From assembly GCF_028641065.1 (NCBI RefSeq), contig NC_073379.1, positions 21,948,001-22,012,000 on the forward strand: a DNA stretch of 64,000 nt, read 5' to 3'. The notes beneath the pieces were generated by a model. The model was not told the DNA's origin and did not search any database. It worked only from the letters and a program-made list of their open reading frames with translations. The position numbers and the translations under genes are program-made. Below are positions 1,342-62,339 of the stretch, piece by piece; position 1 is the stretch's first letter; each line of letters starts with the position of its first letter. The DNA is from Leucoraja erinacea. Taxonomy: Eukaryota.

Positions 1342-1390
1342 ATGCTGTTCATTCTGCTTTGCACCATTGCCCTGCCTATCTCCGCTGATC
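1342..1390 (+). CDS. siglec15-like: Gene A exon 1: signal peptide MLFILLCTIALPISAD
   Basis: ATG followed by 16 hydrophobic codons, then a phase-1 donor C|GTAAGT; homologous to 45987-46035; joins V1 in frame. Confidence 0.8.
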
Positions 1391-1849
1391 GTAAGTTTGC
1401 TTGGGTATGGATATGGTTTAATTGTTGTTAATAAGAACATTTTATTGTTAGAGTTCAGAACGTTTGGGAAAGAGCAAATAAAATGGGCCAGAGGCAAATT
1501 GGAGGCTGGGAAGCAACGTGCAATTGTGGACTCTACAATGCAACACTGAGCAAATGGTCCTCGAGGGGCTGAGAGCAGGTTAATCCTCGGGCTGAAAGTT
1601 CTGTGGGATGGTTGAATAGACTGGGCTTGTGTATTCTTCAGGAGAGAAGGGGGTACTTCATCAAGCAGTTTAAATTGATTTTTACTTGAAAGGGTCAAAT
1701 GAGTGAAAGATTTCCTCTAGACGAGAGTTGAACCGAGGGAGCTGGGAGTACCAAGGAAAAGCGAGACTTGGTGTGCAAGTCTGAGCTATTCTGAAGGTTA
1801 CGGCACAGGTAGATAATATGGTTAGCTGGGGCACAGAATAGAAGAAAAA

Positions 1850-2070
1850 GGGCGGCACAGTGATGCAGCTGGTGGAGTTGCTGCCTCCCTGCCCCAGACC
1901 TAGGTTCAAATCTGATCTTATGGGGAAGTTTGCGTGGAATCTGCACAATCTACCTGTAACCGAGTGAGTTTCATCTGACATGCCACAGGTGTGTAGGTTT
2001 GCCTGTTAATTGGCCTCTGTAAAATTGGCGCTAGTATGTAGGAAGCAGATGCGAATGTGGGACATCATAG
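1850..2070 (+). mobile_element. tRNA-derived SINE (HE1/V-SINE-like)
   Basis: gggcggcacagtgatgcagctggtggagttgctgcctc..ggttcaaatc tRNA-like head with A/B boxes; family name is from recall. Confidence 0.6.
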
Positions 2071-2523
2071 ATCTATGTTATGAGCCGGAGAGACCATGTT
2101 ATGAGTAATAGCTGGTACTGGCATTAACTCTACAGGATTCATAGCTGGGTCCTCTGATTCATAGTGTCGTGGAACATAGAAACGGGCCCCACTTGTCCAT
2201 GCCAACCAAGATGCTCCATCTGTGCTAGTTCCACCTGCCCGCGCGTGTCCAATATCCCTCTGAACCTTTCCAACACATCCATCTGTCCAAATGTCTTTTA
2301 AATGCTGATATAGTACCTATCTCAACTCCCTCATCTGGCAGCTATTCCATATACCTTCTGCCCTCTGTGTGAAAAAGTTGCCCATTGGGTTCTATGAAAT
2401 CTCTCCCCCTCACCTTAAAGCTATGTCCAGTGGTTCTTGATTCCCCTACTCTGGGAAAAATAGTTTTATATTACTAACACAGGGGAAGAGACGGAGTGTA
2501 ACCTATCGAGTTTGCTGGTGACC

Positions 2524-2763
2524 ATGTCAGATGGAATTTTCGCACTGTAAACACTATATATTTATTACTTGGACAGGGGCCACAGAGTGGCACGGGTGGG
2601 GGACTGTTTGGTGAAATTTGAAAAATGTAAAAAATTGTACTGAAAAAACTTGTATAGTCTCCGAAAATGTCGGATGAATTTTGTTTGCTTGAATGGTTCA
2701 GGAATTGTATATATTTATCAATTGAATAAAGTCTATTTTGAAATTAAAAAACAAAAAAAAAAA
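2524..2763 (+). mobile_element. 5'-truncated L1/Tx1-type retro-insertion with poly(A) and 16-bp TSD
   Basis: GAGTTTGCTGGTGACC is duplicated at 2508-2523 and 2764-2779; AATAAA and an A-tail precede the second copy. Confidence 0.8.
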
Positions 2764-2989
2764 GAGTTTGCTGGTGACCTAAAACTGAGTGGGAATGTCA
2801 GCTGGGGGCAGGGCGTAGTGGGTCAACAAAGAGAGACGGGTTAGATATGAGGGAAAGAAAGTACAGATGGGGTAGAACGAGGGAAAATTAGGTCATGTAT
2901 GGAAGAACACGACAACCGAGAATAAACAAAGACACAAGAAATTGCAGGTGCAATTGCAAAATAATTATTATAACAGTTGGAGAGGGGAC

Positions 2990-4850: not shown

Positions 4851-6612
4851 TCATACTAACCATGGAGCACATTAACCCCACGTTAGCTCAACATCAGTGT
4901 CCCAGATCAATCGGTTATTTAGTTCAGTGTTTATTGAATCTTACTGTTCAAACTTTGTCTTCTTCATTTTCCACATTTGAATCAGAGCAATGATGCCACA
5001 GCAGGAAGCTATTTGGTCAATCAAATATGCCAGTGCTCTACATGGAAATTGACCAGATTAATGCATTAACTCTTTCCCCAAGGTCTACAAGTCCCCTTTT
5101 GCTGGCACCGGTAATAACAGTTTCTACATTAACTTCACATAACCGAGAGAAGGTGAAGAGAAGATTTATGAGGATGTTGCTAGAACCTGAGTGCCTGAGC
5201 TAGAGGGAAAGGTTTGGCAAGCTACAACTTTATTCCTTGGAGTGCAGAATAAAGTGATCTTATAGAGGTGTATAAGAGTGATCTTATAGAGGTGTATAAA
5301 ATCATGGGGAATATATAATGTGAATGTTTGGGCACACACGTGGTCACAGGGAGGATGTACAAACTCCGTACAGACAGCAGCCGTGGGGAGGATCGAACCA
5401 AGGTCTCTGGCATTGTAAGGCAGATCCCAAAGGAATTCTTGATAACCATTTTGACTGTCTATGTTATGACCAATTTTTAAGTCATTAGCAAACTTATTAA
5501 TCATTCAAATTGATATAGATGACACATAACAAATGGCCTATCAACAATCCCTGAGACACACCACTAGCTACAGGTCTAACTGGCTACTGGTGGATCATGT
5601 TAACCTGATCTGTTTAGATCTCGTGCAATCTAACCTACTATGCGGAACCTTGTCAAAGGCGTTTCTGAAGACCAAATAGATTATATCTACGACCCAGCCC
5701 TCATCAACCTTGATTACCGCTTCAAAAAACTCAATCACATTCATGAGACATGATCTCCCATGCACAAAACGATGTGACTGTCCCTAATCAACCCTTATCT
5801 TTCCAAGTGGGTGTTTGTCTAATTCCTCAGAATCTACACCAGTGACGATGTTAGGCACATTTCCAAGGTGTTTCTTTGCAGCCCTTCTTAAGTAGAGGCA
5901 CAAAATTAAGCAACCTCTAGTCTTCCTACCCTAACCCAATATTATTCTCCACATATTTCCCTCGATTCCCAGTTCAAACGACCCACATATACACGAGCGG
6001 CAACATACAATGGTCAATTAAATAAAAATGCATGTCTTTGGGATGTTGGAAACGGCATACGAAGGAGAAAGCCCATGCAATCATACATAAAATATGCAAA
6101 CCACACACAGTACCGAAGGTCAGGAGTAAACTCTGGTTCATAGAGTTGTGATTCAGCAGATTGACTAGCTGCTCCACTGTGCCAGCTGTGGAAACCAGTC
6201 ACTTGCGATCAGGTACTTCCTTGGTGGGATCTTTCTGTGCACTGCTTGCCTGTGGCATTCCCAACGCTATTTCACCGCCAACACTTCAAACCTGTGAAGC
6301 TCTGTGGACCACCCCCTGTCTGTGAGGGAAGTGATGTAAATGCAAGGTTTCTCCCGGATAGCAGCTTAGAGCTGTGAGAGATGTGGCTCCAGTGAAGAGC
6401 CGACACAGCCCGGAGGAAGGGAACCACTGTTAGTGTCACAGTCCCACCTCCCCATTTCTCACAGCTCACCACATAGTGACGGTGACAAACAGCACAGCAG
6501 CATCACAGTTCAACTGTCTTCCACAAGGGCAGGGACCCAGGGTAGGCGCAGCCTCCGACAGTGACTGTGGCCCTCAGTTCAGTCTTAACGTTACATCTCT
6601 GTGTCTTCACAG

Positions 6613-6996
6613 GCTGCAGTATCAATGGTTGGTCCATAGAGACATCGGACGAGGTGATGGGAAGGAAGGGGAAGCTCGTGGTTCTGTACTGCAAGTTCGC
6701 TCACCCTCACCGTGAATACAAAGGCAACATCAACATCATCTGGAACGAGAAGGAGCCCAAGAAGACCCTTTTCAAATACAAAAATTATCTATCGAGCGGC
6801 AAGTATAAAAATGAGATCGTGGCTAATGTAGGAGCTCGCTACAGACCAATGGGGGACCCTCGGAAGAACGATGCTTCCATAATCATTAATCAGCTGGGAA
6901 CGACGGATACAAACAAGACCCTCTACTGTCGTGTTGAGCTCACGGGGCAAGCAGGGGCAAAGTTTGACTGCCCACATGGGCGAATCACAGCATCAG
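6613..6996 (+). CDS. siglec15-like: Gene A exon V1: Siglec-15-like V-set domain with the essential Arg (YCRVE)
   Basis: Acceptor ttcacag| and donor G|GTGAGG, phase 1-1. WSIETSDEV..VVLYCKFAHPHREYKGNINIIW..RYRPMGDPRKNDASI..YCRVELTG..HG parallels Siglec-15 WSMQVPPEV..VLPCTFTHPHRHYDGPLTAIW..RFRLLGNPRRNDLSL..FCRVEFAG..HG (recalled sequence). Confidence 0.9.
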
Positions 6997-7569
6997 GTGA
7001 GGAATGATTGTGCTGCAAACAAACAATTTGTCTTCCTTCCTGCTTCCTGTGATTCTGATGTTACTGGCATGGCTGGCAATTGTTCAAGCTGCTGACTTGT
7101 TGGCTACATCACTGGGAGATCATGCCCTGGTTTGACTGCCTAAAATTCATCACGTTGCACTAAACTGAATTTAACTCTATTAACCAACCCTCAACCCACT
7201 TGCCCCGCTGATCACGATCCTGCTGTAGTTTTGATAACCATCTTCACTCAAACTCTTCATTTCTGCCTTGACCATGATGTCCAGTCACTGTGGAATGGGG
7301 GTGATGTCATTGCCACATCTGGCCTGCTGTTATAGTCAAATATTATATCTCCTCCAGTTAAGTTTCAGATATTGGTATTAGTTTATTATTGTCTGTTGCA
7401 CTGAGATACAGTGATATTTTTCTGAGTGCCAGCCAGACAAATCATCCCATTGAGGCACTAGAAACTGCAGATGCTGGAACCATGAGCAAAACACAAAGTG
7501 CTGAAGACACAGTGGGTCAAGCAGCATTGGTGGAGGAAATGGACAGGCAATTATCCGGGTCGGTTCCCT

Positions 7570-8190
7570 TCAAACTGATGTAGTAGTAGGGAGAAAGATG
7601 GGAACGGGGCAAAGCTTGCCCAATGAAAGGTGGATGGAGGTGGGGGAGGGGGGGGGGGGCACGGGGGAGGTGCTTATCAGATGGGTGGAGACAGTGATAA
7701 TGGCGAGTGGTGAAAAGTGGTAAAAGGTGTCAGACAAGGAAACAAAATGTAAAGGTGGAGGCAAATGGATGGAATGGGCCAGGGGAGATGGGCAGGTGAA
7801 AGACGTGATAGAAGGAACTATGGGATTCGAGGATGGGAGATGAATACGGGAGATGAAAGCAGCAGTGTGAAAGGGATAATGGGAGCAATGTGTGCACAGT
7901 GGGCTGGTGGGGGGCGGGAAGGGAGGTATTACTTGAACTTTGAGAGTTCAGTGTTCATACGGTTGGGTTATAAGTTACACAAGCTGACCATGAGGTGCTG
8001 TTCTTCCTGTTTGCGTGTGTTCTCACACTGATAATACACAAGGCCAGCGACAGTCAGGTCAGTGTGGGAACAGAAAGAGGAGTTAAAAAGCGTCGGAACC
8101 AGGAGCTCCAGCAGGCATTGGCAGACTGAACACAAGTATTCATGATATTGGGGACACAGAATGCAATAGATGAGGTTGGAAGAATCATAC
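7570..8190 (-). mobile_element. Penelope-like element 3' remnant (copy at ~51380-51990)
   Basis: Minus strand resembles the Penelope C-terminus RKQEEQHL..L.NL.PN.MNTELSKFK. Confidence 0.55.
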
Positions 8191-9407
8191 CTTAGATGTG
8201 TGCATCAGGCACTGTAAAAGAGAAAATAAGCAAAGTGAAGAATGTAGTATGACAGCTACAGTGAAAGTGCTACTAAAGAGTAGTGCAAGCGTTTAACGTG
8301 GTAGATTGGAAGATCGCGTAATTCAACCCTAGCATTTGTGAGGTCCATTCAAGAATCTAACAAAAGGTAAGAAGTTGTTCTTCCATCTGGTGGTACCTAC
8401 TTTCAAGCTTTTGTATCTTCTGGGTGTGAGAATGTCAGGGTATTAGTTGTCCTTGATAATGTGGTTGCTTTTTCGAGGCAGCATTAAGTGTAGAATGGTG
8501 TAACAGAGAATCAAAATTGACCCTGGCAGATTGGAGAGACAGCATTTGTTCAGGCAGTGTTAGTGAACAGGAAGGGGTAGTCCCTGGTTTTTAAAACAAT
8601 GCTTAGACTATTACGTGAAATGGGAGAAGGAGTCAGAACACAGATGCTCGAACCAACTCTCATCCATAAAATCATGGCTAATTCTGGACCTTGTTCATTG
8701 ACTGAGAGATCCCCCAGACAGTGATCTCCATGAGACCCAGACAAACTGTGGACCTTTGGTTTGAACTTACTCAACTACGTTTTACCCACAGCTTCTGCAT
8801 AATGTGGATTGTTGATTGTAATCATGTATAGTCTTTTCGTTGACTGGTTAGCATGCAATAAAAGCTTTTCACTGTACCTTGGTACAGGTGACAATAAACT
8901 AAACTAGTAAGATTAAACTAGAACTTACCAGTTTGAAGTTTGATCTGTATTTTATGAGGAGTTACGATGAGGGATTACGTGAAGAAGCCCGCTCAGGGCG
9001 CAGGCGTGGCATGCTTCCAAGCAGCGGTGTGGAATCACAGACAGACACACGTATTTGAAGTAACATAGTGAAGAATAAAGAGACATCAATTATCAGTTTG
9101 ATCCATGTAATGAGGGTGGGAGCGGAGGGCACGTAATCCCTCATTGTAACTCCTCATAAAATACAGATCAAACTTCAAACTGGTAAGTTCTCGTTTAATC
9201 TTACTATTTTACTTCGGAGTCACGTGAGTGACTTCGTGAAGATTTCAAAGCTCTGTGATTTCAAACCGTGTAACAGTTTTACTCACTCACTGCCGAAAGC
9301 TCTTGAGGAAGGAAGTGTTATTGTAATCAACCAATGAATCTGTTTTCAAAACAAAACGGTATTTATTAACAATAACAAAAAAACAAATAGCTCCCCCGGG
9401 CTTTAAA

Positions 9408-10178
9408 TTAAATATTTGCAGTTTCTAATATTCTTGCTGCAAATAAATCAGGCTTCACCAACGGCTTGTCATAGAACGTCCGGAATGTGGATTTCCTCGA
9501 CCATCCTGCTTTGTTTAGGATAAGGTCAATAGGCACATTCATTCTTGCTGCCGATGATGTGGATGCTGCCCTGGTGGAATGAGATTTATATACATTAATG
9601 TCTATCCCAGCAGCTTCCAATACCTGTTTTAACCATCTTGAAATGGTCTGGCTCGTTACCCTGCCATGTGGTTTTTTGTGGCTGACCCATAAGACTCTTT
9701 CACTTCCTCGGATATTATGGGTTGTGTCAATATAAATTTTTATGTGGGTCACCACACACAATCGTGGCTCTGGTGGGTAGGCCCGGAATACCACTAGCGT
9801 GTTGGATGTTCCTGGCCTGCTTTGTTTTATCAGACCTTGTATAGTGAAGGTTACCTGGTCTGACGTTGTTTCCATGCTGTCCAGTCGAAGTTTATGCAAT
9901 GACTGGACCCTCTGTGCAGATACTAGAGCCATAAGCATGAGCGTTTTTAATGTCAATTGCTCAAGGCTGAGGGATCTTGCTGGTGGTCTGTCCCGAAGGT
10001 ATGTGAGCACAATACTGATGTCCCAAATTTGAGTATATCTAGGCTTGGGGGGCTTAATGTTATATATGCCCCTCATCAGTTTGACCACCAGCGGATGGGA
10101 CCCCATGGGCTGATGTCCTGCAGGTTTGAGGTAGTTGGAGAGGGCACTACGTGCCATGTTGATGGCACTGTAGCTCAT
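9408..10178 (-). CDS. DIRS tyrosine recombinase (frame extends upstream to ~10290; N-terminus deleted)
   Basis: Catalytic motifs SAQRVQSL, HSTR, AGW, FRTFY. Confidence 0.9.
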   Translation of the reverse strand: MSYSAINMARSALSNYLKPAGHQPMGSHPLVVKLMRGIYNIKPPKPRYTQIWDISIVLTYLRDRPPARSLSLEQLTLKTLMLMALVSAQRVQSLHKLRLDSMETTSDQVTFTIQGLIKQSRPGTSNTLVVFRAYPPEPRLCVVTHIKIYIDTTHNIRGSERVLWVSHKKPHGRVTSQTISRWLKQVLEAAGIDINVYKSHSTRAASTSSAARMNVPIDLILNKAGWSRKSTFRTFYDKPLVKPDLFAARILETANI

Positions 10179-10222
10179 ATCCTCATGATGATGTAAGTAG
10201 GCCAGGAACTCGAGAACATTGG

Positions 10223-12043
10223 CTAATGTGGCTGTTTCGTAAGCAGTCCCCGTTTCTTGGCAGTACCTCTCCCATTTCTTGATGTTGGTGATTCCACCAC
10301 CATGTCATGGAGTACTGGGAACCATGGCTGTGTAGACCAGTCGGGCACCACCAAAATTCCAGATGCTGAATCCATCTGGATTTTGCGAAGTACCCGACTG
10401 ATGAGGCAGAAGGGAGGAAAGGCATAGAAAAAGAACTTTCCCCAATCCAGCGTGAATGCATCTACCGCTGCTGCCTCTGGATCTGGTTCCCACGCGACAT
10501 ACGTAGTTAATTGGTGATTCAGTCTTGATGCAAATAAATCGATATCTGGCTTCCCATATTGCTTTACAATTTTAGCAAATGCTTTAGGATTTAACATCCA
10601 TTCGATGTTGTCATTGAATTTGCGTGACCTGGTGTCCGCCACTGTATTTAGCTTACCTGGTAGATAGGTAGCTGAAAGCCAAATATGTCTTTCGACACAC
10701 CATTGCCAAATCGTATTGACCAATTTGTCGCATGATAAAGATTTTATGCCGCCCATATGGTTAATGTAAGCCACCACCGTAGTATTGTCTATTTGTAATC
10801 TAACATGCAAGTGATGCATATTGGATACATATGCTTTCAAACCATAAAAGGCGCCCAACATTTCCAAATAATTAATGCCCAGTGTAGATAGTAATGATGA
10901 TTCTAAGTTAGTCCATCTACCACCTGTGCTGGATATGGAGTTAGTTGCTCCCCAGCCTTTAGCACTGGCATCTGTTTGGAGTACTAAAGTAGCATTAGTA
11001 ATAACAATAGGACTACAATGATGCCAAATGTTTTGTATCCACCACTGTAGCTCTGATATTGCTTCAGGGGGTAAACGCATGACTCGGTCATAATGACCTT
11101 TATGTTGTTTTAGTGCCTTTACCTTTGCTCTTTGCAAATTTTGATAGTGCAAAGGTCCAAATTGGATAGCTGGAAATGCTGCTACCATTTTGCCAATTAC
11201 TGCTGCCACTTGTCGAATAGCTGGTGTTTTGTTAATCTTTAAGTTATTGCATGATTGTACTAATGCAATCATCTTTTCCCTTGGCAGGGTAATAGTCATT
11301 TGGACTGAGTTAATTGTGAAACCCAGGTAGTCCATTATCGTGGATGGATTTAACTTGGATTTATCTGGATGTAAAACGAACCCTAGAGCTTCTAGGAGCT
11401 GTTTAGTAGCTGATACTGCTGCTACAGCCAATTCCATAGTTTTCACAACTATGAGGATGTCGTCCAAATATGCCATGACTATATGATTAAGTTTCCTTAA
11501 CGTTGCCATGGCTGGTTTTAATATTTTAGTGAATAGTCTTGGGGCTGAAGTAAGCCCATTAGGCAGTGCTTTATACTGCCACAGCTCCCCCATCCAGATA
11601 AATTTAAGGTACCTGCTATAATCCTTATGTATAGGTACCAGAGAGTAAGCATCTTTGAGATCAATGCTTGCCATATAGTATCCTTCGGAAATCAGTTGTC
11701 TAGCAGTCACAAATGTTTCCATTTTGAAATGTATATACTTAACAAAATCATTCAAGGATGTTAAGTCAATGATGATGCGACATCCACCATCTTTTTTAGT
11801 TTTTGTAAATATGTTGGAAACAAATTCCAAGGGCTCATGTTTAGTTTTTTCTATGACCCCTTTGTTTATGAGTCTCACCAGTTCAGCTTGTCCCTCCTGT
11901 TGTTCTTTTTTGAAGAGAAAAAATACCCTTTCGGGCCGGTGTTGAACTGGCGGTATTTTTGAAATAAATTCAATTTTATACCCTCCAATGCTATTGAGTA
12001 TATATTTATCATTAGTGATCAATGCCCATGCTTCTTTAAACAA
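10223..12043 (-). CDS. DIRS pol: reverse transcriptase, RNase H and methyltransferase-like domain
   Basis: IDLKDAY, LPNGL, YLDD; TDAS..GWG, INYLE, IDN, ADTRSR; DLFAS and YAFPPF. Confidence 0.92.
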   Translation of the reverse strand: MFKEAWALITNDKYILNSIGGYKIEFISKIPPVQHRPERVFFLFKKEQQEGQAELVRLINKGVIEKTKHEPLEFVSNIFTKTKKDGGCRIIIDLTSLNDFVKYIHFKMETFVTARQLISEGYYMASIDLKDAYSLVPIHKDYSRYLKFIWMGELWQYKALPNGLTSAPRLFTKILKPAMATLRKLNHIVMAYLDDILIVVKTMELAVAAVSATKQLLEALGFVLHPDKSKLNPSTIMDYLGFTINSVQMTITLPREKMIALVQSCNNLKINKTPAIRQVAAVIGKMVAAFPAIQFGPLHYQNLQRAKVKALKQHKGHYDRVMRLPPEAISELQWWIQNIWHHCSPIVITNATLVLQTDASAKGWGATNSISSTGGRWTNLESSLLSTLGINYLEMLGAFYGLKAYVSNMHHLHVRLQIDNTTVVAYINHMGGIKSLSCDKLVNTIWQWCVERHIWLSATYLPGKLNTVADTRSRKFNDNIEWMLNPKAFAKIVKQYGKPDIDLFASRLNHQLTTYVAWEPDPEAAAVDAFTLDWGKFFFYAFPPFCLISRVLRKIQMDSASGILVVPDWSTQPWFPVLHDMVVESPTSRNGRGTAKKRGLLTKQPH

Positions 12044-12074
12044 GTGTAACCTTCCCCCTGTTAGTAAGGCACCC

Positions 12075-12782
12075 TTATTCTCTGTATGCTGGTAGGAACC
12101 AGATTTGACTGTTGAGACTCTTAACCTTAAGAGCCTCGCAGTTGTCTGGTGCTGTGTGCTCCTCCAGCACTTGGGCGAGCACCTTCTCCTGAAGAGGTTT
12201 GTTCGACAGGTGATTTATACTAGCCGCCATCCTCGGCTCCAAAGGTGCTCCAACCCGTGGGGTAGCGACAAAACGATCCACAACACCCAGCAGCTGTTCT
12301 TCCTGCACACCCTGCACACTCCCGATTCCTTCCACCTGCCCCTTTTCCAGACCAGCCCTGCCCTGGTCACCAATGCTAGCCTCCAGTTCTAGGTCTGAGG
12401 TTGCAAAGGGAAGTGCCGGACTCGACACTATGGAGGAGGCACCTGTCCTGTCTGCCCGAGAGCGCTGCTGTTCTCGGTAGACCATCCCCTCCAAGAGCTG
12501 CTGTATGCAACTCAGGCGGTTGTCTCTCCTCCGTTTTGGGGAGGACATTTCCCCCTCCGACGAGTTGGAGTCGACCGGCCGATTGGTTTTCCGGGTTGCT
12601 TTCCCAGCCCGCCGTGTAGGCTCTGGCGTGACTGGGACCGGCTCGGTCTCGGGAATTGTAAACCGCTCCTCGAGCGGTACTACCGCCGGTTGCTGTCCCA
12701 CTGGAATAGGCTCCTCCGGTGGAGTTAGAGCCCGGGCAGTTTTCTGAGAAAGTTTTCTGCGTTGGGACATTTTGCTCTGCAA
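12075..12782 (-). CDS. DIRS gag-like ORF1, C-terminally truncated
   Basis: First ORF inside the element; PDNCEALKVKSLNSQIW motif, then ends abruptly before pol. Confidence 0.7.
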   Translation of the reverse strand: MQSKMSQRRKLSQKTARALTPPEEPIPVGQQPAVVPLEERFTIPETEPVPVTPEPTRRAGKATRKTNRPVDSNSSEGEMSSPKRRRDNRLSCIQQLLEGMVYREQQRSRADRTGASSIVSSPALPFATSDLELEASIGDQGRAGLEKGQVEGIGSVQGVQEEQLLGVVDRFVATPRVGAPLEPRMAASINHLSNKPLQEKVLAQVLEEHTAPDNCEALKVKSLNSQIWFLPAYRE

Positions 12783-14531: not shown

Positions 14532-14721
14532 GTAAGGAAACAGTCAGTGTTGAGGAGTAAATGATAAAATCACATTGAACAACTGTGAGAAGAATGAGCT
14601 TTGATCTGTTTCCTCTTTGAGCATTTCACTCCATTCTCCCGCTGGGTCTCTTTCAAATCTTCACCCTTTCCTGGTTCTCCCCCTGCACCAATGAATAACA
14701 GTGACTTTTATCCATCTCTAG

Positions 14722-50807: not shown

Positions 50808-53800
50808 GTGAGGAATGATTGTGCTGCAAACAAACAATTTGTCTTCCTTCCTGCTTCCTGTGATTCCAATGTTACTGGCATGGCTGGCAATTGTTCAAGC
50901 TGCTGACTTGTTGGCTACATCACTGGGAGATCATGCCCTGGTTTGACTGTCTAAAATACATCACGTTGCACTAAACTGAATTTAAATCTATTAACCAACC
51001 CTCAACCCACTTGCCCCGCTGATCACGATCCTGCTGTGGTTTTGATAACCATCTTCACTCATAATCCTCATTTCTGCCTTGACCATGATGTCCCGTCACT
51101 GTGGAATGGGGTGATGTCATTGCCACATCTGGCCTGCTGTTATAGTCACATATTATATCTCCTCCAGTTAAGTTTCAGATATTGGTATTGGTTTATTATT
51201 GTCTATTGCACTGAGATATAGTGATATTTTTCCGAGTGCCATCCAGACAAATCATCCCATTGAGGCACTAGAAACTGGAGATGCTGGAACCATGAGCAAT
51301 ACACAAAGTGCTGAAGACACAGTGGGTCAAGCAGCATTGGTGGAGGAAATGGACAGGCAATTATCCGGGTCGGTTCCCTTCAAACTGATGGAGTAGTAGG
51401 GAGAAAGATGGGAACGGGGCAAAGCTTGCCCAATGAGAGGTGGATGGAGGTGGGAGAGGGGGGGGGGGGCACGGGGGAGATGCTTATCAGATGGGTGGAG
51501 ACAGTGATAATGGCGAGTGGTGAAAAGTGGTAAAAGGTGTCAGACAAGGAAACAAAATGTAAAGGCGGAGGCAAATGGATGGAATGGGCCAGGGGAGATG
51601 GGCAGGTGAAAGACGTGATAGAAGGAACTATGGGATTCGAGGATGGGAGATGAATACGGGAGATGAAAGGAGCAGTGTGAAAGGGATAATGGGAGCAATG
51701 TGTGCACAGTGGGCTGGTGGAGGGGGGGGGAGGGGAGGTATTACTTGAACTTTGAGAGTTCAGTGTTCATACGGTTGGGTTATAAGTTACACAAGCTGAC
51801 CATGAGGTGCTGTTCTTCCTGTTTGAGTGTGTTCTCACACTGATAATACACAAGGCCAGTGACAGTCAGGTCAGTGTGGGAACAGAAAGAGGAGTTAAAA
51901 TGCGTCGGAACCAGGAGCTCCAGCAGGCCTTGGCAGACTGAACACAAGTATTCATCATATTGGGGACACAGAATGCAATAGATGAGGTTGGAAGAATCAT
52001 ACCTTAGATGTGTGCATCAGGCACTGTAAAAGAGAAAATAAGCAAAGTGAAGAATGTAGTATGACAGCTACAGTGAAAGTGCTACTAAAGAGTAGTGCAA
52101 TCGTTTAACGTGGTAGATTGGAAGATCGCGTAATTCAACCCTAGCATTTGTGAGGTCCATTCAAGACTCTAACAATAGGTAAGAAGTTGTTCTTCCATCT
52201 GGTGGTACCTACTTTCAAGTTTTTGTATCTTCTGGGTGTGAGAATGTCAGGGTATTAGTTGTCCTTGATAATGTGGTTGCTTTTTCGAGGCAGCATTAAG
52301 TGTAGAATGGTGAAACAGAGAATCAAAATTGACCCTGGCAGATTGAAGAGACAGCATTTGTTCAGGCAGTGTTAGTGAACAGGAAGGGGTAGTCCCTGGT
52401 TTTTAAAACAATGCTTAGACTATTACGTGAAATGGGAGAAGGGGTCAGAACACAGATGCTCGAACCCATTCTCATCCATAAAATCATGGCTAATTCTGGA
52501 CCTTGTTCATTCGCTGAGAGATCCCCCAGAGTGATCTCCATGAGACCCAGATAAACTGTGGACCTTTGGTTTGAACTTACTCAGCTACGTTTTACCCACA
52601 GCTTCTGCATAATGTGGATTGTTGATTGTAATCATGTATAGTCTTTTCGTTGACTGGTTAGCATGCAATAAAAGCTTTTCACTGTACCTTGGTGCAGGTG
52701 ACAATAAACTAAACTCTGGGATGGAAAATTCAGTAGGTTCACAAACATTATTGCAGGGAATTTCTTGACCTCAGTCCTGAATGTCTGACTTCTTTTTCCT
52801 TGACATGTGGTTTTTGAATCATAAGCAGGAAGAAATAAACTTTCCACAAGTATTTGTGAAATCCATCTATTTCCCAGAGCCCTCTGTCCATTGACATCCA
52901 TCAGTCCCAGTCCCCCTATTCTTTCCACACAATCCCCCAAATTATTCCAATCAGGTGTGTTTAATAGTCATATGCACTGGGATTAGAACAACACAATTTT
53001 TCATTGCTGCAACTTTGCAGGCACATTGATGCAACATAATAATACATTTACAACAAACAGTAATACAATATCAGTTATACATGGTAATAGCATTTGATTA
53101 ACATTTGAAGTATTTAAAGCAACCTTATACAAAGGGCATAATAGTTTGGTGCAAGAGCCTGATGATGCCACAATGAACCTAAACACAACCAAACTTCAGC
53201 ACTGATCTGTTATGGACAAATAACGGGATTGCTGTATCACAGTTCGGGAGGGAGATCTTTAGTGAAATCAAAACAACCTGTTAAATGGCAAGATTGTCTT
53301 CTTGAACCTGGAGGTAAAGGTTCACATTTCCTGAACCTTCTACCTGGCAGTAGCAACAAGAGGAGATCAAGCCGTGTGATACTGTTATATTGGCTGCCCT
53401 CTATATTTACTCTCATTCACTTACCAATCAAGTGACCACAACAGCCAATCACCAGGGCAATCCTGTCCCCAACCGATCATAGATTCCTCCACATTCCCAC
53501 TTCTCTGCAACATAAAAGACATTTGTTTTATTGTAACTTTTCCCAGTTCTGATCATCAACCTGACAATCATTTGTTTCTCTCCTGATTTTTTCTATGTCA
53601 ATGTAGCTATCGTAATCTTGTACTTCATACTTTCATCATTGAGCCCAGCGTCTCGCACTTCACTAACCATTGCCTCAATGTGTCACATTTGTTTTAGTTA
53701 ACTGTGTCTCAGAAGGAGTTTCCACATGTTCCTTGGCATCCTTGAGCATTGTTCTGTTTAACTATCTTATCTCTCATTTCTGTGTAGGTATTATCACTCG

Positions 53801-54932
53801 GTGCGTGTCTCTGTTAATTTTTATCTCACACACCTTCTCCACCTCTTCATATTCCATCTGCAATCTTCTTATAATTCGATGGAAAATGGCCATGTAGTAG
53901 AACATGCAGTAGAAAATGTAGTAGAGGTATACTACATCGACTGGATCCTTCCTTATCAATTCTGTTAGATATATTGTCCACCCTAACCCTAAACTCCACT
54001 TAAATTGTCAACAGAACTTCCCCTTCATCAAGAATTAAAACATAAATTGCTGTAAAATTAATCAGGTCTGAATGCAAGTCAACTGGAGGGGCGACAATAT
54101 CCATGTAGGACGTTGTGTTGCTGCTACTCAGGAGGGTTTAATCTAGTTTGTCAGAAGGTTGGGAACTGGAGCAGGTGGAGGAATTGAATGGGATGTAGAC
54201 ATCAGTTTAAGGCTGATCAGAAGGGCTGGCGGGGCCAGGTTAATGAACGCAGTGGAACTGATGGGCTGAAGTGTGTTTATTTCAATTCTATGTTTATTAT
54301 GTGTAAGGCAGATGAATATAGAGTTTGGATTAATGCATGGAACTATGATGTTGTGGCCATTAGAGTTTTGGTTGAGCGAGGGGCGAGACTGACACCATAA
54401 TGTTCCAGGGTTTTAGACATGATTTAGTAGCATTGTAGGTTATGTAAAAAAACAACCAGGCCACCTGCAATTACTCTATTCAATTTGATTTGAGAATTCT
54501 GCATATTATTTATAAAGTAGATGAATTACAATTACAGTTACATTTCACCGCTCTAGAGCAGCGCAGGAAGGTCAGGGACAGATGGGTCAGAGTGGGAGTG
54601 GGATGGAGAAACATGGTCACAGATGTGTAGGAAGGAACTGCAGATGCTGATTTATACCGAAGATAGACACAAAATGCTGGAGTAACACAACGTGCCAGGC
54701 AGCATCTATGGAGAAATGGAATAGATTCTACTTCAGGTCTGAAGAAGGCTTCCATTCACAAACATTACCTACTACTTTTCTCCAGAGATGCCGCATGATC
54801 TGCTGAGTTACTCCAGCATTTTGTGTCTATCAACATGGTCACAGACACAGGTAAAGTATTGATAAAAATAAATGTGGTTAATGCATCCGACCAATGAATA
54901 ATGTCCATATTTTAAATCTTTCTCTATCCGAG

Positions 54933-55301
54933 GTGATGTCAACGCATCTATGGTGATCGGGAAGAGAGGACGTGGTGCCACACTGAACTGCAACTTCAAA
55001 CACTCGAGAGCAAATAGCAGGGTGATCACTATCCTCTGGATGAAGGGGACTCCATGGGAAGAGTCCGTTGTCTTTAATCATACCCGCTCCTACGGCACAA
55101 GCGGTCCCGGCACTGACAATGTAAATAGAGGAGGTCGATATGAGCTGGTGGGAAACGTAGACAAGGGAGACGCCTCCATCAGAGTGAGGGGACTCATGTT
55201 GAATGACACCAACAACTATTTCTGTCATGTTTGGATCTTTAAATCCTCTAAGAAGGAAAATATTCAGGTGACTCAGGATGAAACGGGACTACAGGTTTTG
55301 G
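54933..55301 (+). CDS. siglec15-like: Gene B exon V2 (FCHVW)
   Basis: Acceptor tctttctctatccGAG| and donor G|GTAAGG; 369 nt, phase 1-1, open. Confidence 0.8.
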
Positions 55302-55489
55302 GTAAGGAAACAGTCAGTGTTGAGAAGTAAATGATAAAATCACATTGAACAACTGTGAGAAGAATGAGCTTTGTTCTGTTTCCTCTCTGAATATTTCACT
55401 CCATTCTCCCGCTGGGTCTCTTTCAAATCTTCACCCTTCCTGGTTCTCCCCTGCACCAATGAATAACAGTGACTTTTATCCCTCTCTAG

Positions 55490-55718
55490 GCTTCAGCCAC
55501 CATCTTGGAGCGATGGTGATAATGTATCTGGAGATACGTGTGTGTGCGGGAGAGAATGGACAGGTTGATCATTTCAGCTGCCATTTGTTGAGTCTACTTT
55601 CTTGTGATTGGCTTCACTTTCTAGTGATTAAACATAGATAAACATCATGTCTAATCTCCATTGCTGGTGTTGATGGGATAATCATGGGACCTCCAGTGAC
55701 ATTGTTGTCAGCCTCTGG
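55490..55718 (+). pseudogene. Decayed C2+TM exon relic behind V2 (gene B intron)
   Basis: Near-identical to 14722-14950; A-type TM sequence with stops. Confidence 0.8.
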
Positions 55719-57969
55719 TTCCGGTAATGGGGGAGGGGAGAAGAGAGAGTAACTCGGGTGTGAGTGATCCTTCATTATGTTGGCTGCTTTCCCAAGGAAT
55801 AAATGCAGTTGATGGGCGGGGGAACGAGGGAAAACCTTTTATTCATTCTACATGGTTAATCCTGAGCTTTCTGGTGCTTGTAATCTTAATCATCCATGCA
55901 ATTCCCCCTCTGACTATTTTTTGTGACTTCCTTATAACCCGTCTAATGCAATTTGAAGAACAGGGCTCTCTGCATCATTGCAGACTCCATTGAATTCAAG
56001 AATTTTGGATGATACTTTTTCTCTCTTTTATCAGAACTAACCAGTTCTACTGAAGATAAGCAAAATGGAATATTAATCAGTTATTCTCTGAACAATTATT
56101 GTAACTTAAAATAAGTTAGCTGAAGTTGCAGAGGTTGTATAGAGGGGTGGATTGGAAATAGGAAATATTTCTGAAAGGGTGAGTCTAGGTTTGCTGTTGA
56201 TGAAATTATCTGGTTGATAAATTAAGGAAGGAAACTGGAGACAGAGAACACAAACAAAGATAGAAACAGAGCTGCAAAACGTACGTCAGCTGCAAGAAAC
56301 ACGCTGCAGATCAGGCAGTGTCAGTGGACAGAGGAGAACTGAGTCAGTATTGCAGATGGATAACCTACTGCAAAACTTCTGATACAAACAGTGAGAAAGT
56401 TACCAGAAATTATTGTATTCAATGTTGACTCAATGGTTCAATGGGTCAACCGTGAATAGAACAATTTCTGGTGACTTGCTCGCTGTTTGTATCAGAACTG
56501 GCGAGTTCTACAGCATCTGCGATACTGACTCAGTTCTCCTGAAGAAGAATCACGACCCGAAACGTCACCGATTCATTCTATCCAGAGATGCTGCCAGCCC
56601 GCTGAATTACTCCAGCATTTTGTGTCTATTTTCGGTTCAATGGTTTCTTTATTATCACCTGTAGCAAGTACAGTGAAATACTTTTTTGCATACAGATCAG
56701 TAAGAATATCACCGTACATAAATAAGCACAATCCCCCCGGTTAGTACATCATGTACAGAAGAACCCACCGAGTCTGGGCAACAGTTGCCATTTTGCACCA
56801 TTTTACAGACCTCGATGCAGTGGCCACAGAGGCCCCATTGCAGCCGCCGCCTCCATTCCAGTTGTCCTGGAATGTTGACCCTCACCCTGCACAGCCCTAT
56901 TCAGCCCTTCTTCCCCAGGGGTGGTGTGCGGTGGGTGGGGGGGGCTCCTCCCGCAGATGAGATTAGGGAGCGGAAGTTAAAAACTCCTCCACCCCGCCTG
57001 ATTCCGTTAACCAGGCATTTTCAGGATGGCTGCCAGTTACTAGCAGAGTTCCGCAGGGCTCGGTGCTGGGGCCGCTGCTCTTCACGTTGTATATTAATGA
57101 TTTGGATGAGGGGATCGAAGACTTTGTGGCCAAGTTTGCGAATTATACGAAAATAGGTGGATGGGCAGGTAGTGCAGAGAAAGCAGGGTCTCTGCAGAAG
57201 AACTTGGATAGGTTGGGAGAGTGGGCAGAGAAGTGGCAGATGGAAAGGTGTGGAAAAGTGTGGAGTCATGTATTTTGGTAATAGGATTAAAGGCGTTGGT
57301 TACTTTTTAAATGTCGAGAGAATCCAGAAATCGGAGGTGCAAGGTGACTTGAGAATGCTGGTGCAGGATTCACAAAAAGTTAATCTGCAAGTCAAATCAG
57401 TTATAAAGAAAGCAAACGCAATGCTAGCATTTATTTTGAGAGGGTTTATATGCAAAAGTAGGGATGTAAAGCTGAGAATCTTTCAGGCGCTGGTCAGGCC
57501 ACATTTGGAATATTGTGAGCAATTTTAGGCACCATATCTGAGGAAGGATGTGCTGGCTCTGGAGAGGGTCCAAAGGAGGTTCACAAGAATGATCCCAGGA
57601 ATGAGTAGGATAACATCAGATGAATATTTGACGGCACTGGGCCTATGTTTGCTGCAGTTTAGAAGAATGAGGGAGGACGACATTGAAACAGACAGAATAG
57701 TGAAAGGCTTGGATGTGGAGAGGATGCTTCCACTAGTGGGAGAGTTGAAGACGAGAGGTTTTAGCCTCAGAATTAAAGGGACGTTCTTTTAGGAAGGAGA
57801 TGAGGATGAATTTCTTTGGCAGGAGGGTGATGAATCTATGGAATTCATTGCCACAGATGGCTGTGGAGGCAAAGTCAGTGGATATATTTAAGGCAGAGGT
57901 AAGTTGATTCCTGATTAGTGCAGATGTCAGAGGTAATGAGAAGTGCTTCGGGTGCAGAACCTAAGACCG

Positions 57970-58019
<50 letters not shown>
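57970..58019. repeat. Poly-C tract (shorter in the gene A copies)
   Basis: About 50 C; the homologous site marks the V3 duplication boundary in A. Confidence 0.95.
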
Positions 58020-58021
<2 letters not shown>

Positions 58022-58302
58022 CCCCACCTAATCAGTTAACCGCGCCTTTAGTCACCCTCCATCCTCCTCTCCGGTTCCTGGTCTTCAAGGTCAAGGCTCC
58101 ATCCTGGCCAGACTGAAGCTGAGATGTCATTACTTGAGATTGGCCCTTATTAGAATAGTGCAGGTCAGGAACAGGTGGATCAGAGTGGAATGGGATGGAG
58201 AATCCAAGTCACAAGTATGGATGAACTATTGATAAAGACTGTGTGGTTATTGTATTCAATTACTAAATCATATTCACACTTTAAAACTCTTCTCTCTGCA
58301 AG

Positions 58303-58665
58303 TTGATAATGACAGAGCATCCATGGTGATTGGGAGGAAGGGTGCGACTGCCACACTGCCCTGCTCCTTCAGTCCCTCGAACAGGAATCCCAGCTCCATC
58401 ACCATCAGCTGGATGAAGGGGAATCCACCAAAATGGTCTGTTGTCTTTCGTGACACTTCTCCCCCCCCAGCAGCAAATAACATTCCGAAAAATGTAAATA
58501 AAGGAGATCGATATGATCTGGTGGGAAATGTGGAGCAGGGAGACGCCTCCATCAGAGTGAAGGGACTCAAACTGGACGACGCCAGTGATTACACCTGTCA
58601 CGTTTATGTCAGGTATTCAGCGTTGACGACTGTGACTCAAGATGAGATGAAACTGCAGGTTGTGG
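58303..58665 (+). CDS. siglec15-like: Gene B exon V3 (YTCHV)
   Basis: Paralogue of V3a/V3b; AAG acceptor and G|GTAAGG donor; 363 nt. Confidence 0.85.
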
Positions 58666-59847
58666 GTAAGGAAACGTATGTTATGCTGTAAACGATAATA
58701 TCATATTGCACAACCTTAAGAGGAATGAGCTCCCAGTGACAGTGTAGACCAGCACAGGAACAGGCCCTTTGGCCCGCAATGTCTGTACCGAACATGATGC
58801 TACGTTAATCTCGTCTACCTGCAGGTGATACATTTCTTCCATTACCTGCATTTCAAAAAGTCTCTAAAACTCCACTATCGTAGCTGCCTCCACCACCCCT
58901 AACAGTATTTTCCTGGCACCCACCACCCTCTGTGTAAACAATAACTTTCCCCACATATCTCCTTTCATCTTTTCCCATCTGTCCTTGTCACAATACCGTC
59001 TATTCGTTGACATTTCCGCCGTAGGCAAAAGGTTCTGACTCTCTCTCCTATCCATGTCTTTCATATTTTTATAAACTTTCAACAGTCCAGAGAAACAGTT
59101 CAAGTATGTCCGACCTTTTCTTATAACTATTACCCTCTAATCCAGGCAGCATTCTGCTAAACCTCTTCTGAACCCTTTCCAAAGTCTCCTCATCCTTCCT
59201 GTAATGGGTGAAAACTGCACATAAAACTGAATGCAATAATCCCAGTGTCGTAACTAAAGTTGTATAGAGCTACAACATGACTTCCTGACTCTTGTATTCA
59301 GTAGATAGACACTAAAAGCTGGAGTAACTCACCGGGACAGGTAGCATCTCTGGAGAGAAGGAATGGATGATGTTTCGGGTCAAGTATCTTCTTCTTGACC
59401 TGAAACGTGACACATCCTTTCTCTCCAGAGATGCTGCCTGTCCCGCTGAGTTACTCCAGCTTTTTGTGTCCATCTTCGGTTTTAACCAGCATCTGCAGTT
59501 CCTTCCTACACATCTTGTATTCAGTACCTTGACCAATGAAAGCAAGAATACTGTACACGTTTTTAACGTGTTGCCATTTTCAAGGAGTTATGGAATTGGA
59601 TCCCAATATTTTTCTGTACATCAGTGGTATTAAGGGACTTGCCCTTGTATATTTTCCACTTGCATTCAACCTCCCAAAGACAACACTTCACATATGTTTG
59701 GATCAAACTCCATCTGCCATTTCTCTGCCTATATCTGTATTAGATCAACATTTGTAGTATCTTTCGACAGTTCTACGTTCATCTGCCTTCCTCATGATAC
59801 TCTTGCATTGTCAATAAGCAACACTACAGCCCATGTGTGGGTTTGAT

Positions 59848-59995
59848 ATTTGAGCTGCCACTTATGTGGACTGCACTCTTACGATTGGCTTCACTTTCTC
59901 ATGTTTGAACAGAGGTGAACGCCACTGTCTCATCTCCAATGTTAGTGTTGACGGGAGACTTGTGGCATCTCCAGTGATATTGTCATCAGCCTCTA
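59848..59995 (+). pseudogene. Decayed TM exon relic behind V3 (gene B intron)
   Basis: I*AATYVDCTLTIGFTFSCLNRGERH..VSVDGR..ASPVILS aligns to gene A IRAAIYAVYFLIIGLTFCWLKRGERL..ASVNRR..APPVTVS. Confidence 0.8.
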
Positions 59996-60066
59996 GCTAT
60001 GGTGGTTTGTGTCAGGTAATATTGACTTTTGAGGCAGTTCTGGCCAGTTCTTATACTTAACAGTAA

Positions 60067-60729
60067 AGGGCTTGTCCCACTTAGGTGATTTTTTAGGCGA
60101 CTGCCGGTGACTGTCATGGTCGTAGCAGGTTGCCGAAAAACCGGTGACTGGACCCCCCCCACGACAATGTCTACAACAACCTACCACCTAGTCGACGTTA
60201 AGCCATGACAACCGGCGACTCAATCGTCACGACTTAGGACGTCCACCTACGACCACACCTAGACAACCCTACGACCACACAGGTGACAACCTACGATAAC
60301 CAGTCAACCGACCTCCACCCGCGACAAGCTACGACAAGCTACCACCCTGTCGGTGACAATTGAAGACTTCTCTTGACACGGTAGCTGTCGCCGGTTGACG
60401 CAGGTTGACGTAGGTAGTCCCCAAATGAATTCATCGAAGTCAGCACCAGCGACAACATACATCATCCTGGCAACAACCTATGTTATCCTGGCGACAACTT
60501 ACGACAGCACCTACGTCAGGAGAAGACAAGCTACGACAAGCCCAAGATCGCTGAGTGTCGTCAAAAAGATTTGAACATTTCAAAATCCTGCGGCGACCAG
60601 AAAAACACTACGGATCTTTGGGCGACTTAAGGAGACGACTCACGACCCTACATGTGACACCCGGCAACCGTGTGGTGACCGCCTAGTCGCCCGTTGTCCC
60701 CTAATAATCGCGTAAGTTGGACAGGCCCT
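60067..60729. mobile_element. PIF/Harbinger-type MITE
   Basis: TIR agggcttgtcccactta / taagttggacaggccct, TAA TSD (60064-60066, 60730-60732), internal ctacgac-like repeats. Confidence 0.85.
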
Positions 60730-60957
60730 TAAGCAAGTTATTGAAATTGTTGTATTAAATGTTAACACAAAAGCTTCATGCTGCCCAGACAGAAGATGAG
60801 GTTGCTTGAGATTGGGCCTCGTTAGAACAATGCAGGAGGTCTGAGACAGACAGATCAGAGCGGGAGTGGGATGGGGAATCAATGTCACAGGCATGGATGA
60901 TGTATTTTTATAAACCATGTGGAATAGATTGTTAAATACAACTTTTCTCTATACAAG

Positions 60958-61320
60958 ATGGAAAGAAGAACACATCCATGGTGATTGGGAAGAGAAGAGA
61001 TTCAGCCACACTGCCCTGCTCCTTCAGCCCCTTGAACAAGAATCCCAGCCCCATCACTGTCCGCTGGATGAAGGGGAATCCACGGGAAGAGTCCACAGTC
61101 TTTAATCACACCCACCCCCACTCTGTGAACCCTCCCTCCACTGTCACTGTAAAGGGAGGAGGTCGATATGAGCTGGTGGGAAAACTAGACCAGGGAGACG
61201 CCTCTATCAGAGTGAAGGAACTCAGACTGGACGACAGCAGTGACTATTTCTGTTACGTTTGGGTCAGGAATTCCACACAGGAGACGGTGACTCAGGATGA
61301 GACTAAACTGGAGGTTGTGG
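60958..61320 (+). CDS. siglec15-like: Gene B exon V4 (YFCYV); no counterpart in gene A
   Basis: Acceptor cttttctctatacAAG| and donor G|GTAAGG; 363 nt; SATLPCSF..VRW..GDASIRVKELRLDDSSDYFC. Confidence 0.85.
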
Positions 61321-61970
61321 GTAAGGAAATATCTGTCTGTGTTGTGCTGTGAACGATAAAATCACATTAACAACTGTAAGAGGACATGAGATCCACTGAC
61401 AGCTGGAGCCGAGATCGGCCCAATCCATTGTAGGTTCCATTCCTTGCACTGGGCTTCCCTTGCTCAGCACTGCCCCTAGTGGTTGGAAAACAGTGCTGAT
61501 TCCAGCCAGGTTGCACGGAGCTCCCTGCAGCAGGATCAGAGATTCAGAACCACATTCACCAGCTGAACCTCCAGTCCCTGTGTCTGTGACATGGTCTGTG
61601 TTACAAAGATCCACAGACGGCCCTGGGGGTATCATCCGTCTCTTTCATTCACATCGACTCCGGTAACCTGTATGTTCTCTCACTGAATATTACATAGAAC
61701 AGCACAGCACAGGACCAGGCCCTTTGGCCCGCAATATCTGTGCAGAATATAATGGTTCTGTAAGTTAAACTAATATCATCTGCTGACACATGATCCATAT
61801 CCCTCCATTCCCTGTAGATCCATGTGCTTCTCAAAGACACCGTCATATCTGCAAATATTTCACTGCAGTCTCCTAGATGTGTCCTTCCAATCCCCATTCA
61901 GATGGAGTTTATCCGCACACACCAACAGTGATTAATTCAATTAATTTAATACATTTCTTCCTTCTCCAAG

Positions 61971-62339
61971 TCCCAGCCACCATCCTGGAGCTGTCCGTTG
62001 TGAGTGACAATGTAACTGGAGAACGCACCCTTGTGTGCAGGGCTGAAGGGAAGCCCCCTGCAAACATCACATGGATCGGCCCAGGGAACAGCTCACTGCC
62101 CGTGAACATTAGTGAGATGACAGTCACACATGATCCAGAGAAACTACTGACTGTGGGAGAGCTGCTTCACCTCACGCTGCCAGGGAAATACACGTGTGTG
62201 GCTGAGAATGAACACCAGATGGACACGCGTGAGATCCGCCTATTCGAGGTTGGGGGAGTGTTGCACCCAGGCGTCTACATTGGATTACCCATATTGGCTA
62301 TTGGCCTGATGGTATTTGCTCTCATCTCTTTGAAAAAAT
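61971..62339 (+). CDS. siglec15-like: Gene B exon C2-set + neutral TM (GVYIGLPILAIGLMVFALISLKK); cytoplasmic exons not found in the window
   Basis: C2 is near-identical to gene A up to 62249, then the stalk/TM is unrelated; strong donor T|GTGAGT. Confidence 0.85.

Follow-up and report, generated by a model that had tools for sequence, protein, structure and literature searches.

A 64,000-nucleotide stretch of the little skate genome (Leucoraja erinacea, contig NC_073379.1, positions 21,948,001 to 22,012,000 of the forward strand; hereafter the window) carries two neighboring genes, A and B, which we read, at a probability of roughly 0.55, as tandem members of a skate multigene receptor family derived from Siglec-15 that would together form a pair of one activating-type and one inhibitory-type receptor. 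Specifically, each gene encodes a signal peptide, a first V-set domain (V1) that keeps the arginine for sialic acid, another three V-set domains in which it is absent, a C2 domain and one transmembrane (TM) segment, and the two genes part just past C2, where gene A acquires an Arg-bearing TM segment and gene B an uncharged one that leads, in RefSeq models, to an immunoreceptor tyrosine-based inhibitory motif (ITIM). More tentatively, the two genes may belong to a three-way system derived from Siglec-15 in cartilaginous fishes, with Lys-TM (DAP12-type), Arg-TM (FcR-gamma-type) and ITIM-tailed members whose ectodomains would have been exchanged repeatedly and whose V1 loops would be diversifying.

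The window is free of gaps, and comparing it with itself by BLAST reveals a duplicated region whose tandem copies are offset by about 40 kb. Each copy holds a gene of six exons, comprising a leader exon, four V-set exons and a final exon for C2 and TM; gene A spans 1342-22624, and the visible exons of gene B lie between 45987 and 62339, the gene extending beyond the window (Table 1). A first-pass annotation of the same sequence had placed the genes at these positions, and its boundaries stand, from the leader ATG of A at 1342 to the last visible exon of B, which ends at 62339 directly before the donor GTGAGT. All Ig exons of A and B are in splice phase 1-1 with AG/GT borders, and the six exons of gene A amount to 663 open codons with AG/GT at every splice site. 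With single exons rather than joined proteins as queries, Pfam reports a V-set domain in 8 of 8 V exons and Ig, I-set or C2-set domains in the last exon. The leaders, located by a scan for an ATG followed by a hydrophobic stretch and a phase-1 donor, are alike in A and B and also resemble those of Amblyraja and Rhinoraja models. The resulting domain order is V1-V2-V3a-V3b-C2 in A and V1-V2-V3-V4-C2 in B.

With respect to kinship, the best match of the A V1 domain in the PDB is human Siglec-15 (7zoz, E 5.6e-17), the next matches (myelin P0, CD33) lying at 5e-5 or weaker, and the skate CRVE motif aligns on the human FCRVE that carries the sialic-acid Arg, which is kept in both A and B; the assignment of V1 to the Siglec-15 lineage at first pass is therefore well placed. 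In Siglec-15 this Arg (human R143) is required for sialic-acid binding, and a TM Lys couples the receptor to DAP12/DAP10 (PMC7226832). The C2 exon encodes a generic Ig domain with Siglec-15 among its matches, and in both genes C2 and TM share a single exon, so that V1 with its Arg, a related C2 and the C2-plus-TM exon are all held in common with vertebrate Siglec-15 orthologues. These orthologues differ from A and B in having the mid-TM Lys for DAP12/DAP10, which is replaced by an Arg at TM position 4-5 in A and by no charge at all in B, and in having one V and one C2 domain in human (V-V-C2 in the chondrichthyan orthologues) rather than four V domains. The little skate also has a separate Lys-TM Siglec-15 gene of V-V-C2 layout (XP_055488168), and in the C2 tree described below three skate Lys-type genes form a clade of their own (100/98), apart from A, B and their Rhinoraja and Amblyraja paralogues. 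Judged from sequence, A and B are paralogues of Siglec-15 and not its orthologue.

The feature on which the pairing of A and B turns is the abrupt end of their homology. C2 ends in ...REIRLFE in both terminal exons, and the last homology block stops at 22434 in A and 62253 in B, inside the exon and one to two codons past IRLFE; beyond this point a forced alignment of the two TM/tail regions gives 28% identity, which equals noise. The switch to unrelated sequence directly after IRLFE within one exon, the observation from which the first-pass annotation set out, is thus borne out, and a hydropathy scan agrees with its description of an Arg at the outer TM end of A and an uncharged TM in B. Past the breakpoint, gene A encodes a hydrophobic stretch that is preceded by DE and contains the Arg, then KR, and finally a tyrosine-free tail of 33 residues closed by the TAA at 22622. 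Within the best 19-residue hydropathy window the Arg is residue 4, and counted over the 23 residues that DE and KR enclose it is residue 5; it therefore falls within the hydrophobic span, whereas a location outside the membrane had been named at first pass as a refutation of the pair.

The short tail of A has a plausible origin. After 22523 the gene reads GAG/GTGAAC (the slash marks the exon border), a weak or vestigial donor at the same place and in the same phase as the splice in B and in shark ITIM-type genes, which suggests that the tail arose through weakening of this donor and read-through. Continued use of the donor was considered and is disfavored, since four Rhinoraja models read through the TM/tail region as A does, compared with two that splice into transposon-like sequence, and RNA reads from run X12 (see below) cross the site. 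Besides the four read-through models, two Rhinoraja models keep the Arg but splice elsewhere or carry an adjacent Pro; in all, five models have the Arg-TM unchanged and a sixth has the Arg beside a Pro, and another has Trp in place of Arg. An Arg-TM with a read-through tail is also present in the sawfish Pristis pectinata. The A TM/tail is 75% identical to that of Rhinoraja and 54% identical to that of Pristis, and conservation of the TM between skates and sawfish is highest around the Arg, at LAIRAAIY.VYFL; a catshark relative has a homologous second TM half and a similar read-through tail without the Arg. By analogy with other receptors, the Arg of A would pair with the TM aspartate of an adaptor bearing an ITAM (immunoreceptor tyrosine-based activation motif). 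The analogy concerns the position of the Arg, and because this is TM position 4-5, we infer that FcR-gamma would be the likeliest adaptor.

On the inhibitory side, gene B encodes after the breakpoint an uncharged hydrophobic stretch, KK and a strong donor. Two RefSeq proteins of Leucoraja erinacea, XP_055488229 and XP_055488227 (isoforms X3 and X1 of LOC129695366), match every Ig exon of B residue for residue, and beyond ...SLKK both continue with DPIYSVV and the canonical ITIM LIYSIV (LxYxxV); a TLYSNL motif is present in isoform X1 only. The first-pass annotation had noted that no ITIM of B is visible in the window and had made a tyrosine motif farther downstream a point to be checked. The former holds, in that a motif scan and tblastn with the RefSeq B tail and its Rhinoraja counterpart find neither a B tail exon nor an ITIM-like open reading frame (ORF) in 62340-64000, and the latter is answered by the two RefSeq models. 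The ITIM of B would, we infer, recruit SHP-type phosphatases. The TM/tail of B is 69% identical to that of Rhinoraja longicauda XP_078286854, which keeps both DPIYSVV and LIYSIV, and 44% identical to that of the Pristis N-type gene. We also considered whether the B TM is random sequence newly recruited; the 69% identity to the Rhinoraja gene, which includes the tail, and the fact that B-type tails are recognizable in sawfish and manta genes rule this out. No inhibitory-tail relics were found downstream of A in 22625-45900.

In terms of the ectodomains, self-BLAST blocks of A 6277-22434 and B 50091-62253 are 94-98% identical, with 96-97% DNA identity over the shared block. Protein identity between A and B is lower and uneven, at 74.6% for V1, 89.9% for V2, 90.0% for V3 and 90.3% for C2, and the fourth domain is non-orthologous, being a second V3 in A (V3b, which is 95.8% identical to V3a and 61% identical to B V4) and a distinct V4 in B. 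The earlier description of a near-identical ectodomain is consequently overstated. Moreover, the exons of A and B have diverged 2.3 times as much as the introns (6.3% versus 2.7%, Fisher p 1e-10), and the excess stays when V1 is left out (p 0.003). In V1 the nonsynonymous divergence (dN) is 0.134 and the synonymous divergence (dS) 0.086, giving a dN/dS of 1.56; the ratio is about 1-1.25 in V2 and V3. The V1 mismatches, which affect 32 of 126 aligned positions, are clustered in 6637-6816 and 6937-6996 around an identical core of 40 residues that holds the sialic-acid Arg region. The fast divergence of the exons, concentrated in the V1 loops, would stem from diversifying selection on the ligand-binding face or from conversion there by other paralogues that was limited to exons.

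The relatives of A and B show how such a pair could have been assembled. In an HMMER search of the full library, for which the last exon of A was the query, and in subsequent word-index searches, the family is limited to cartilaginous fishes; its proteins are automatic RefSeq predictions that often bear the name "uncharacterized". When 39 family members are placed in a maximum-likelihood tree of the 93-residue C2, they sort by lineage rather than by signaling type. The neutral/ITIM-type genes of Heptranchias fall with the Lys-type (99/94), those of Heterodontus do likewise (100/98), the chimaera genes stand together (100/100), and all Arg-type and neutral-type genes of skates form one clade (100/97), which splits into Leucoraja plus Amblyraja versus Rhinoraja with both types in each part. 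Approximately unbiased (AU) tests, for which the groups were defined with the tree already in view, reject a clade of skate Arg-type C2 (p 0.027) and one of skate neutral-type C2 (p 0.0035). The TM/tail regions, unlike C2, are type-specific across genera. This combination of C2 by lineage and TM/tail by type implies that the ectodomain was copied or recombined between old signaling modules. In Rhinoraja, with at least six Arg-type and two to three neutral-TM models, the R-type and N-type models part at about the same point as A and B, just past C2.

In two sharks and a chimaera, ITIM-tailed and Lys-TM paralogues of the same species have nearly identical C2 domains (P0016/P0165 in Heterodontus, P0020/P0178 in Heptranchias, P0170/P0045 in Callorhinchus), and pairing of Lys-type with ITIM-type genes therefore seems general in cartilaginous fishes. 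A mixed state is seen in the neutral-type P0167 of Hemitrygon and P0005 of Mobula, which have an Arg near the outer TM end (LARYIV) together with the start of an inhibitory-type tail and could be intermediates between module types. By these comparisons, A and B belong to a family that extends across the chondrichthyans and includes Lys, Arg and ITIM types. The first-pass annotation had proposed an independently evolved pair of the Siglec-15 lineage. Its Siglec-15-like V1 and its division into an Arg-TM member and a neutral-TM, inhibitory one are retained here, but the pair is not private to this locus; because the Arg and ITIM modules are old and orthologous across batoids, and because Lys-type genes have ITIM partners in sharks and chimaera, it was not a local invention.

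Relics in the introns bear on the direction of exchange. Two lie in introns of A and two in introns of B (Table 1), and all four contain stops and match the A-type end rather than the B-type end; by tblastn the TM/tail part alone is detectable in the introns, and C2 is not. Since A-type relics occur in the introns of both genes, the multi-V block appears to have grown inside an Arg-type gene and to have been joined later to the ITIM-type end of B. Growth would have proceeded by duplication of V-plus-TM units within the Arg-type gene, after which joining of the Arg-type ectodomain block to an ITIM-type end would have produced gene B. One Amblyraja model has the layout V3-V3-C2 with an A-type stalk and another has V1-V2-V3-V4-C2, so both layouts are older than the split between Leucoraja and Amblyraja.

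A number of observations weigh against A and B forming a working pair, and many of them would be explained if gene A were a decaying or silent duplicate whose Arg-TM end was inherited from functional relatives and which makes no working receptor, an alternative that we consider unlikely. Database searches covering 86-1043 aa found no protein model of A. A 1016-bp deletion in A (14100-14180, compared with B 53929-54945) took the native V2 acceptor and the first V2 codons, leaving an in-phase AG in a purine-rich context, and V2 may be skipped in A transcripts; skipping would, however, preserve the frame. V4 has been lost from A and V3 duplicated, yet a V3-V3-C2 layout with an A-type stalk is found in Amblyraja and so predates that split. 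The dN/dS ratios near 1 in V2 and V3 are also compatible with relaxed constraint, and an indel test is compatible with neutrality (2.0 events expected, 1 seen, p 0.40) and uninformative. Nonetheless, the frame is open across all six exons, the splice sites are complete and the only exon indel between A and B is in frame, and the TM/tail of A is intact as opposed to the stops in its four intronic relics. Transcription points both ways. Four raw-read runs of the species, of unknown tissue, were placed on 19700-25600 at 90% likeness; dispersed repeats at 20.3-21.3 kb and 25.0-25.2 kb account for most of the placed reads, and gene A is covered at about 2x in one run of the four, which is too low to list splice joints. 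In that run, X12, first-mate-minus reads cover 22064-24624 at a depth of 0.4-2.8, including in sense orientation the A-specific TM/tail and about 2 kb beyond; the reads continue past 22523, the intron bins 19700-19896 and 21670-21866 are empty, and poly(A) signals lie at 24297, 24576 and 24676. These reads fit a spliced mRNA of gene A in which 22523 is read through and the 3' untranslated region (UTR) measures about 2 kb, although other Arg-type paralogues could contribute to them.

Further points against a working pair concern B and the common ligand. The tail of B is known from automatic RefSeq models, its exons lying outside the window, and the C-terminal 50 or so residues of isoform X1 match the antisense of reverse-transcriptase-like repeats (39716-39790, 48771-48845, 16737-16808), so that this transposon-like extension is probably an annotation artefact; the choice of AU-test groups in hindsight also counts here. 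With V1 differing at about a quarter of its aligned positions, a ligand common to A and B should not be taken for granted, and the two could instead be independent members of a diversifying family that bind different ligands and resemble each other through recent duplication and patchy gene conversion. The V1 changes in presumed loops, the faster divergence of exons than introns, the contrast of V3b with V4 and the numbers of Arg-type and neutral-TM models in Rhinoraja, which do not stand at 1:1, all fit such a reading. We nevertheless think it improbable, in that the homology block stops exactly at the boundary between ectodomain and TM, with the Rhinoraja types parting at about the same point, C2 has been homogenized between types within lineages, A and B have in common an unchanged V1 core around the sialic-acid Arg, and divergent binding loops are also found in known paired receptors. 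Still less probable is that A is expressed but that its Arg recruits no ITAM adaptor, A then serving as a tail-less decoy or co-receptor or binding some other membrane partner. The Rhinoraja model with Trp for Arg, the catshark relative with the same kind of tail but no Arg, and the stingray and manta neutral-type genes that combine an outer-TM Arg with inhibitory-type tails would agree with this; nonetheless, no other part of the TM is conserved as well between skates and sawfish as the surroundings of the Arg (LAIRAAIY). Receptors that depend on an adaptor are moreover generally marked by a charged TM residue together with a short tail lacking tyrosine, as found in A. Finally, in KIR2DL4 and macaque KIR3DS the choice of FcR-gamma is set by an Arg at TM position 4 (PMC8102735). 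Taken together, these considerations leave an activating-type/inhibitory-type pair as the reading of A and B that we favor.

Table 1. Features of genes A and B in the window (positions counted from its first nucleotide; a slash in a donor sequence marks the exon border).
Feature	Position	Strand	Basis or remark
Gene A exon 1, leader (16 codons + 1 nt), ATG at 1342	1342..1390	+	Leader scan; donor ATC/GTAAGT, phase 1
Gene A exon 2, V1, Siglec-15-like V-set, CRVE Arg kept	6613..6996	+	Pfam V-set, PDB match 7zoz, splice sites
Gene A exon 3, V2 (V-set without Arg), substitute acceptor	14172..14531	+	Pfam, splice sites, alignment to B
Gene A exon 4, V3a	17992..18354	+	Pfam V-set E 1.6e-14; 90% identical to B V3 in protein
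Gene A exon 5, V3b, tandem copy of V3a in place of B V4	19976..20338	+	Self-BLAST, Pfam, aa identity
Gene A exon 6, C2, stalk, Arg-TM and tail	22152..22624	+	Translation, Pfam, splice sites, hydropathy
Gene A TM	22448-22516	+	Arg codon CGG 22460-22462
Gene A stop TAA	22622-22624	+	After 33-residue tail
Gene A probable 3' UTR	22625..24700	+	Run X12 read depth, poly(A) signals; weak evidence
A copy of shared ectodomain block (exons and introns)	6277..22434	+	Self-BLAST; broken at about 8906-12960, where A has a DIRS-like insertion
Gene B exon 1, leader	45987..46035	+	Leader scan; outside RefSeq protein models
Gene B exon 2, V1, Siglec-15-like, Arg kept	50427..50807	+	Pfam; identical to XP_055488229 N-terminus
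Gene B exon 3, V2	54933..55301	+	Pfam, RefSeq model, splice sites
Gene B exon 4, V3	58303..58665	+	Pfam, RefSeq model, splice sites
Gene B exon 5, V4, no A counterpart	60958..61320	+	Self-BLAST, Pfam, RefSeq model
Gene B exon 6, C2, uncharged TM (about 62273-62332) and KK	61971..62339	+	Donor AAT/GTGAGT; tail exons beyond 64000
B copy of shared ectodomain block	50091..62253	+	Self-BLAST
Decayed A-type TM/tail relic, A intron after V2, in-frame stops	14803..14936	+	tblastn and alignment
Decayed A-type TM/tail relic, A intron after V3a, TGA at Arg codon position	19531..19641	+	tblastn and alignment
A-type TM relic, B intron after V2	55571..55704	+	tblastn and alignment
A-type TM/tail relic, B intron after V3	59842..59991	+	tblastn E 1e-6 against A TM/tail

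Apart from the two genes, the window is notable for mobile elements. An A-specific insertion of about 4 kb in the V1-V2 intron (8906-12960, minus strand), absent from B, looks like a DIRS-type retroelement, with ORFs for a reverse transcriptase (10226-12214) and a tyrosine recombinase (9411-10304) and a third long ORF (12078-12935). Beside and between the genes lie a Tc1/mariner-type transposase fragment (Sleeping Beauty helix-turn-helix) at 2-802 and a reverse transcriptase of the long interspersed nuclear element (LINE) type at 37908-39635, both on the minus strand, and transposon domains are all that Pfam finds in intergenic ORFs. The region 25888-33081 is GC-rich (52-57%) and has long ORFs without Pfam match and internal direct and inverted repeats, in which 25968-26724 resembles 29598-30323, 28633-28965 resembles 30967-31306, and 25888-26527 is inverted relative to 32416-33081. 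In each of the four runs, RNA reads of both strands pile up by the thousands on the short dispersed repeats at 20880-21280 and 25019-25215, with many back-going and opposite-strand joints, and 98% of these reads run into unlike sequence. A scan of the window against Rfam at gathering thresholds gave no matches.

To our knowledge, paired Siglecs have been described only in the mammalian CD33-related group. Siglec-5/14 and Siglec-11/16 belong to that group, and their activating partners signal through DAP12. In primates the genes of such a pair are linked, gene conversion preserves the likeness of their ectodomain-coding 5' parts, and one member carries an ITIM and the other a charged TM and a short tail (PMC4042635, PMC5701461), and Siglec-14 and -16 interact with DAP10/DAP12 (PMC7226832). 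The skate pair has the same linkage and the same division into an ITIM-tailed gene and one with a charged TM and short tail, and it shows the paired-receptor feature of ectodomain homology that stops before the TM, with C2 sorted by lineage and TM/tail by type. It differs in belonging to the Siglec-15 lineage, in its four V-sets and multigene setting, in the outer-TM Arg and read-through tail of A, and in a V1 that is diverging between A and B rather than being held identical.

The closest parallel to the end of gene A comes from another family. Macaque KIR3DS is a KIR3D ectodomain recombined with the KIR2DL4 TM; its TM holds an Arg at position 4, its short tail came about by mutation of a splice site after the TM exon, and it binds FcR-gamma and not DAP12 (PMC8102735). 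Skate A shares an outer-TM Arg (position 4-5), the short tail from a splice-site change and the recombination between ectodomain and TM, but differs in Ig receptor family and host, and the skate relics suggest the opposite direction, with an Arg-type block joined to an ITIM-type end. Fish NITR and LITR are V-set receptors that occur in clusters, change rapidly and in concert, and comprise members with an ITIM and members with a charged TM. The same is true of the CEACAM pairs of Xenopus (PMC5112662). All three are multigene sets of ITIM and charged-TM V-set members like the skate family; their V domains are, however, unrelated and lack the Siglec Arg, and none is derived from Siglec-15. A review of fish Siglecs counts just four conserved Siglecs and treats Siglec-15 as an activating receptor coupled to DAP12 by Lys (PMC7226832), and our literature search turned up no account of paired Siglecs, or of Siglec paralogues, from cartilaginous fish.

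The skate locus shows the Siglec-15 lineage expanded into a cluster in which ITIM and Arg-TM members share and exchange ectodomains, and if A and B are the pair that we propose, the paired-receptor design of mammalian Siglecs would have arisen also from the Siglec-15 lineage in cartilaginous fish. The locus would then provide an independent case, some 400 million years distant, of paired receptors produced through exon-level recombination, splice-donor decay and diversifying selection on V1. Two questions follow: which ITAM adaptors already told a Lys from an Arg in cartilaginous fish, and under what pressure, from sialoglycans or from pathogens, V1 diverges. Should the tentative three-way reading of Lys-TM, Arg-TM and ITIM-tailed members also be true, this would be the oldest paired Siglec system known, and Siglec-15, usually seen as a conserved, lone activating Siglec, would have stood in a paired set early in jawed-vertebrate history.

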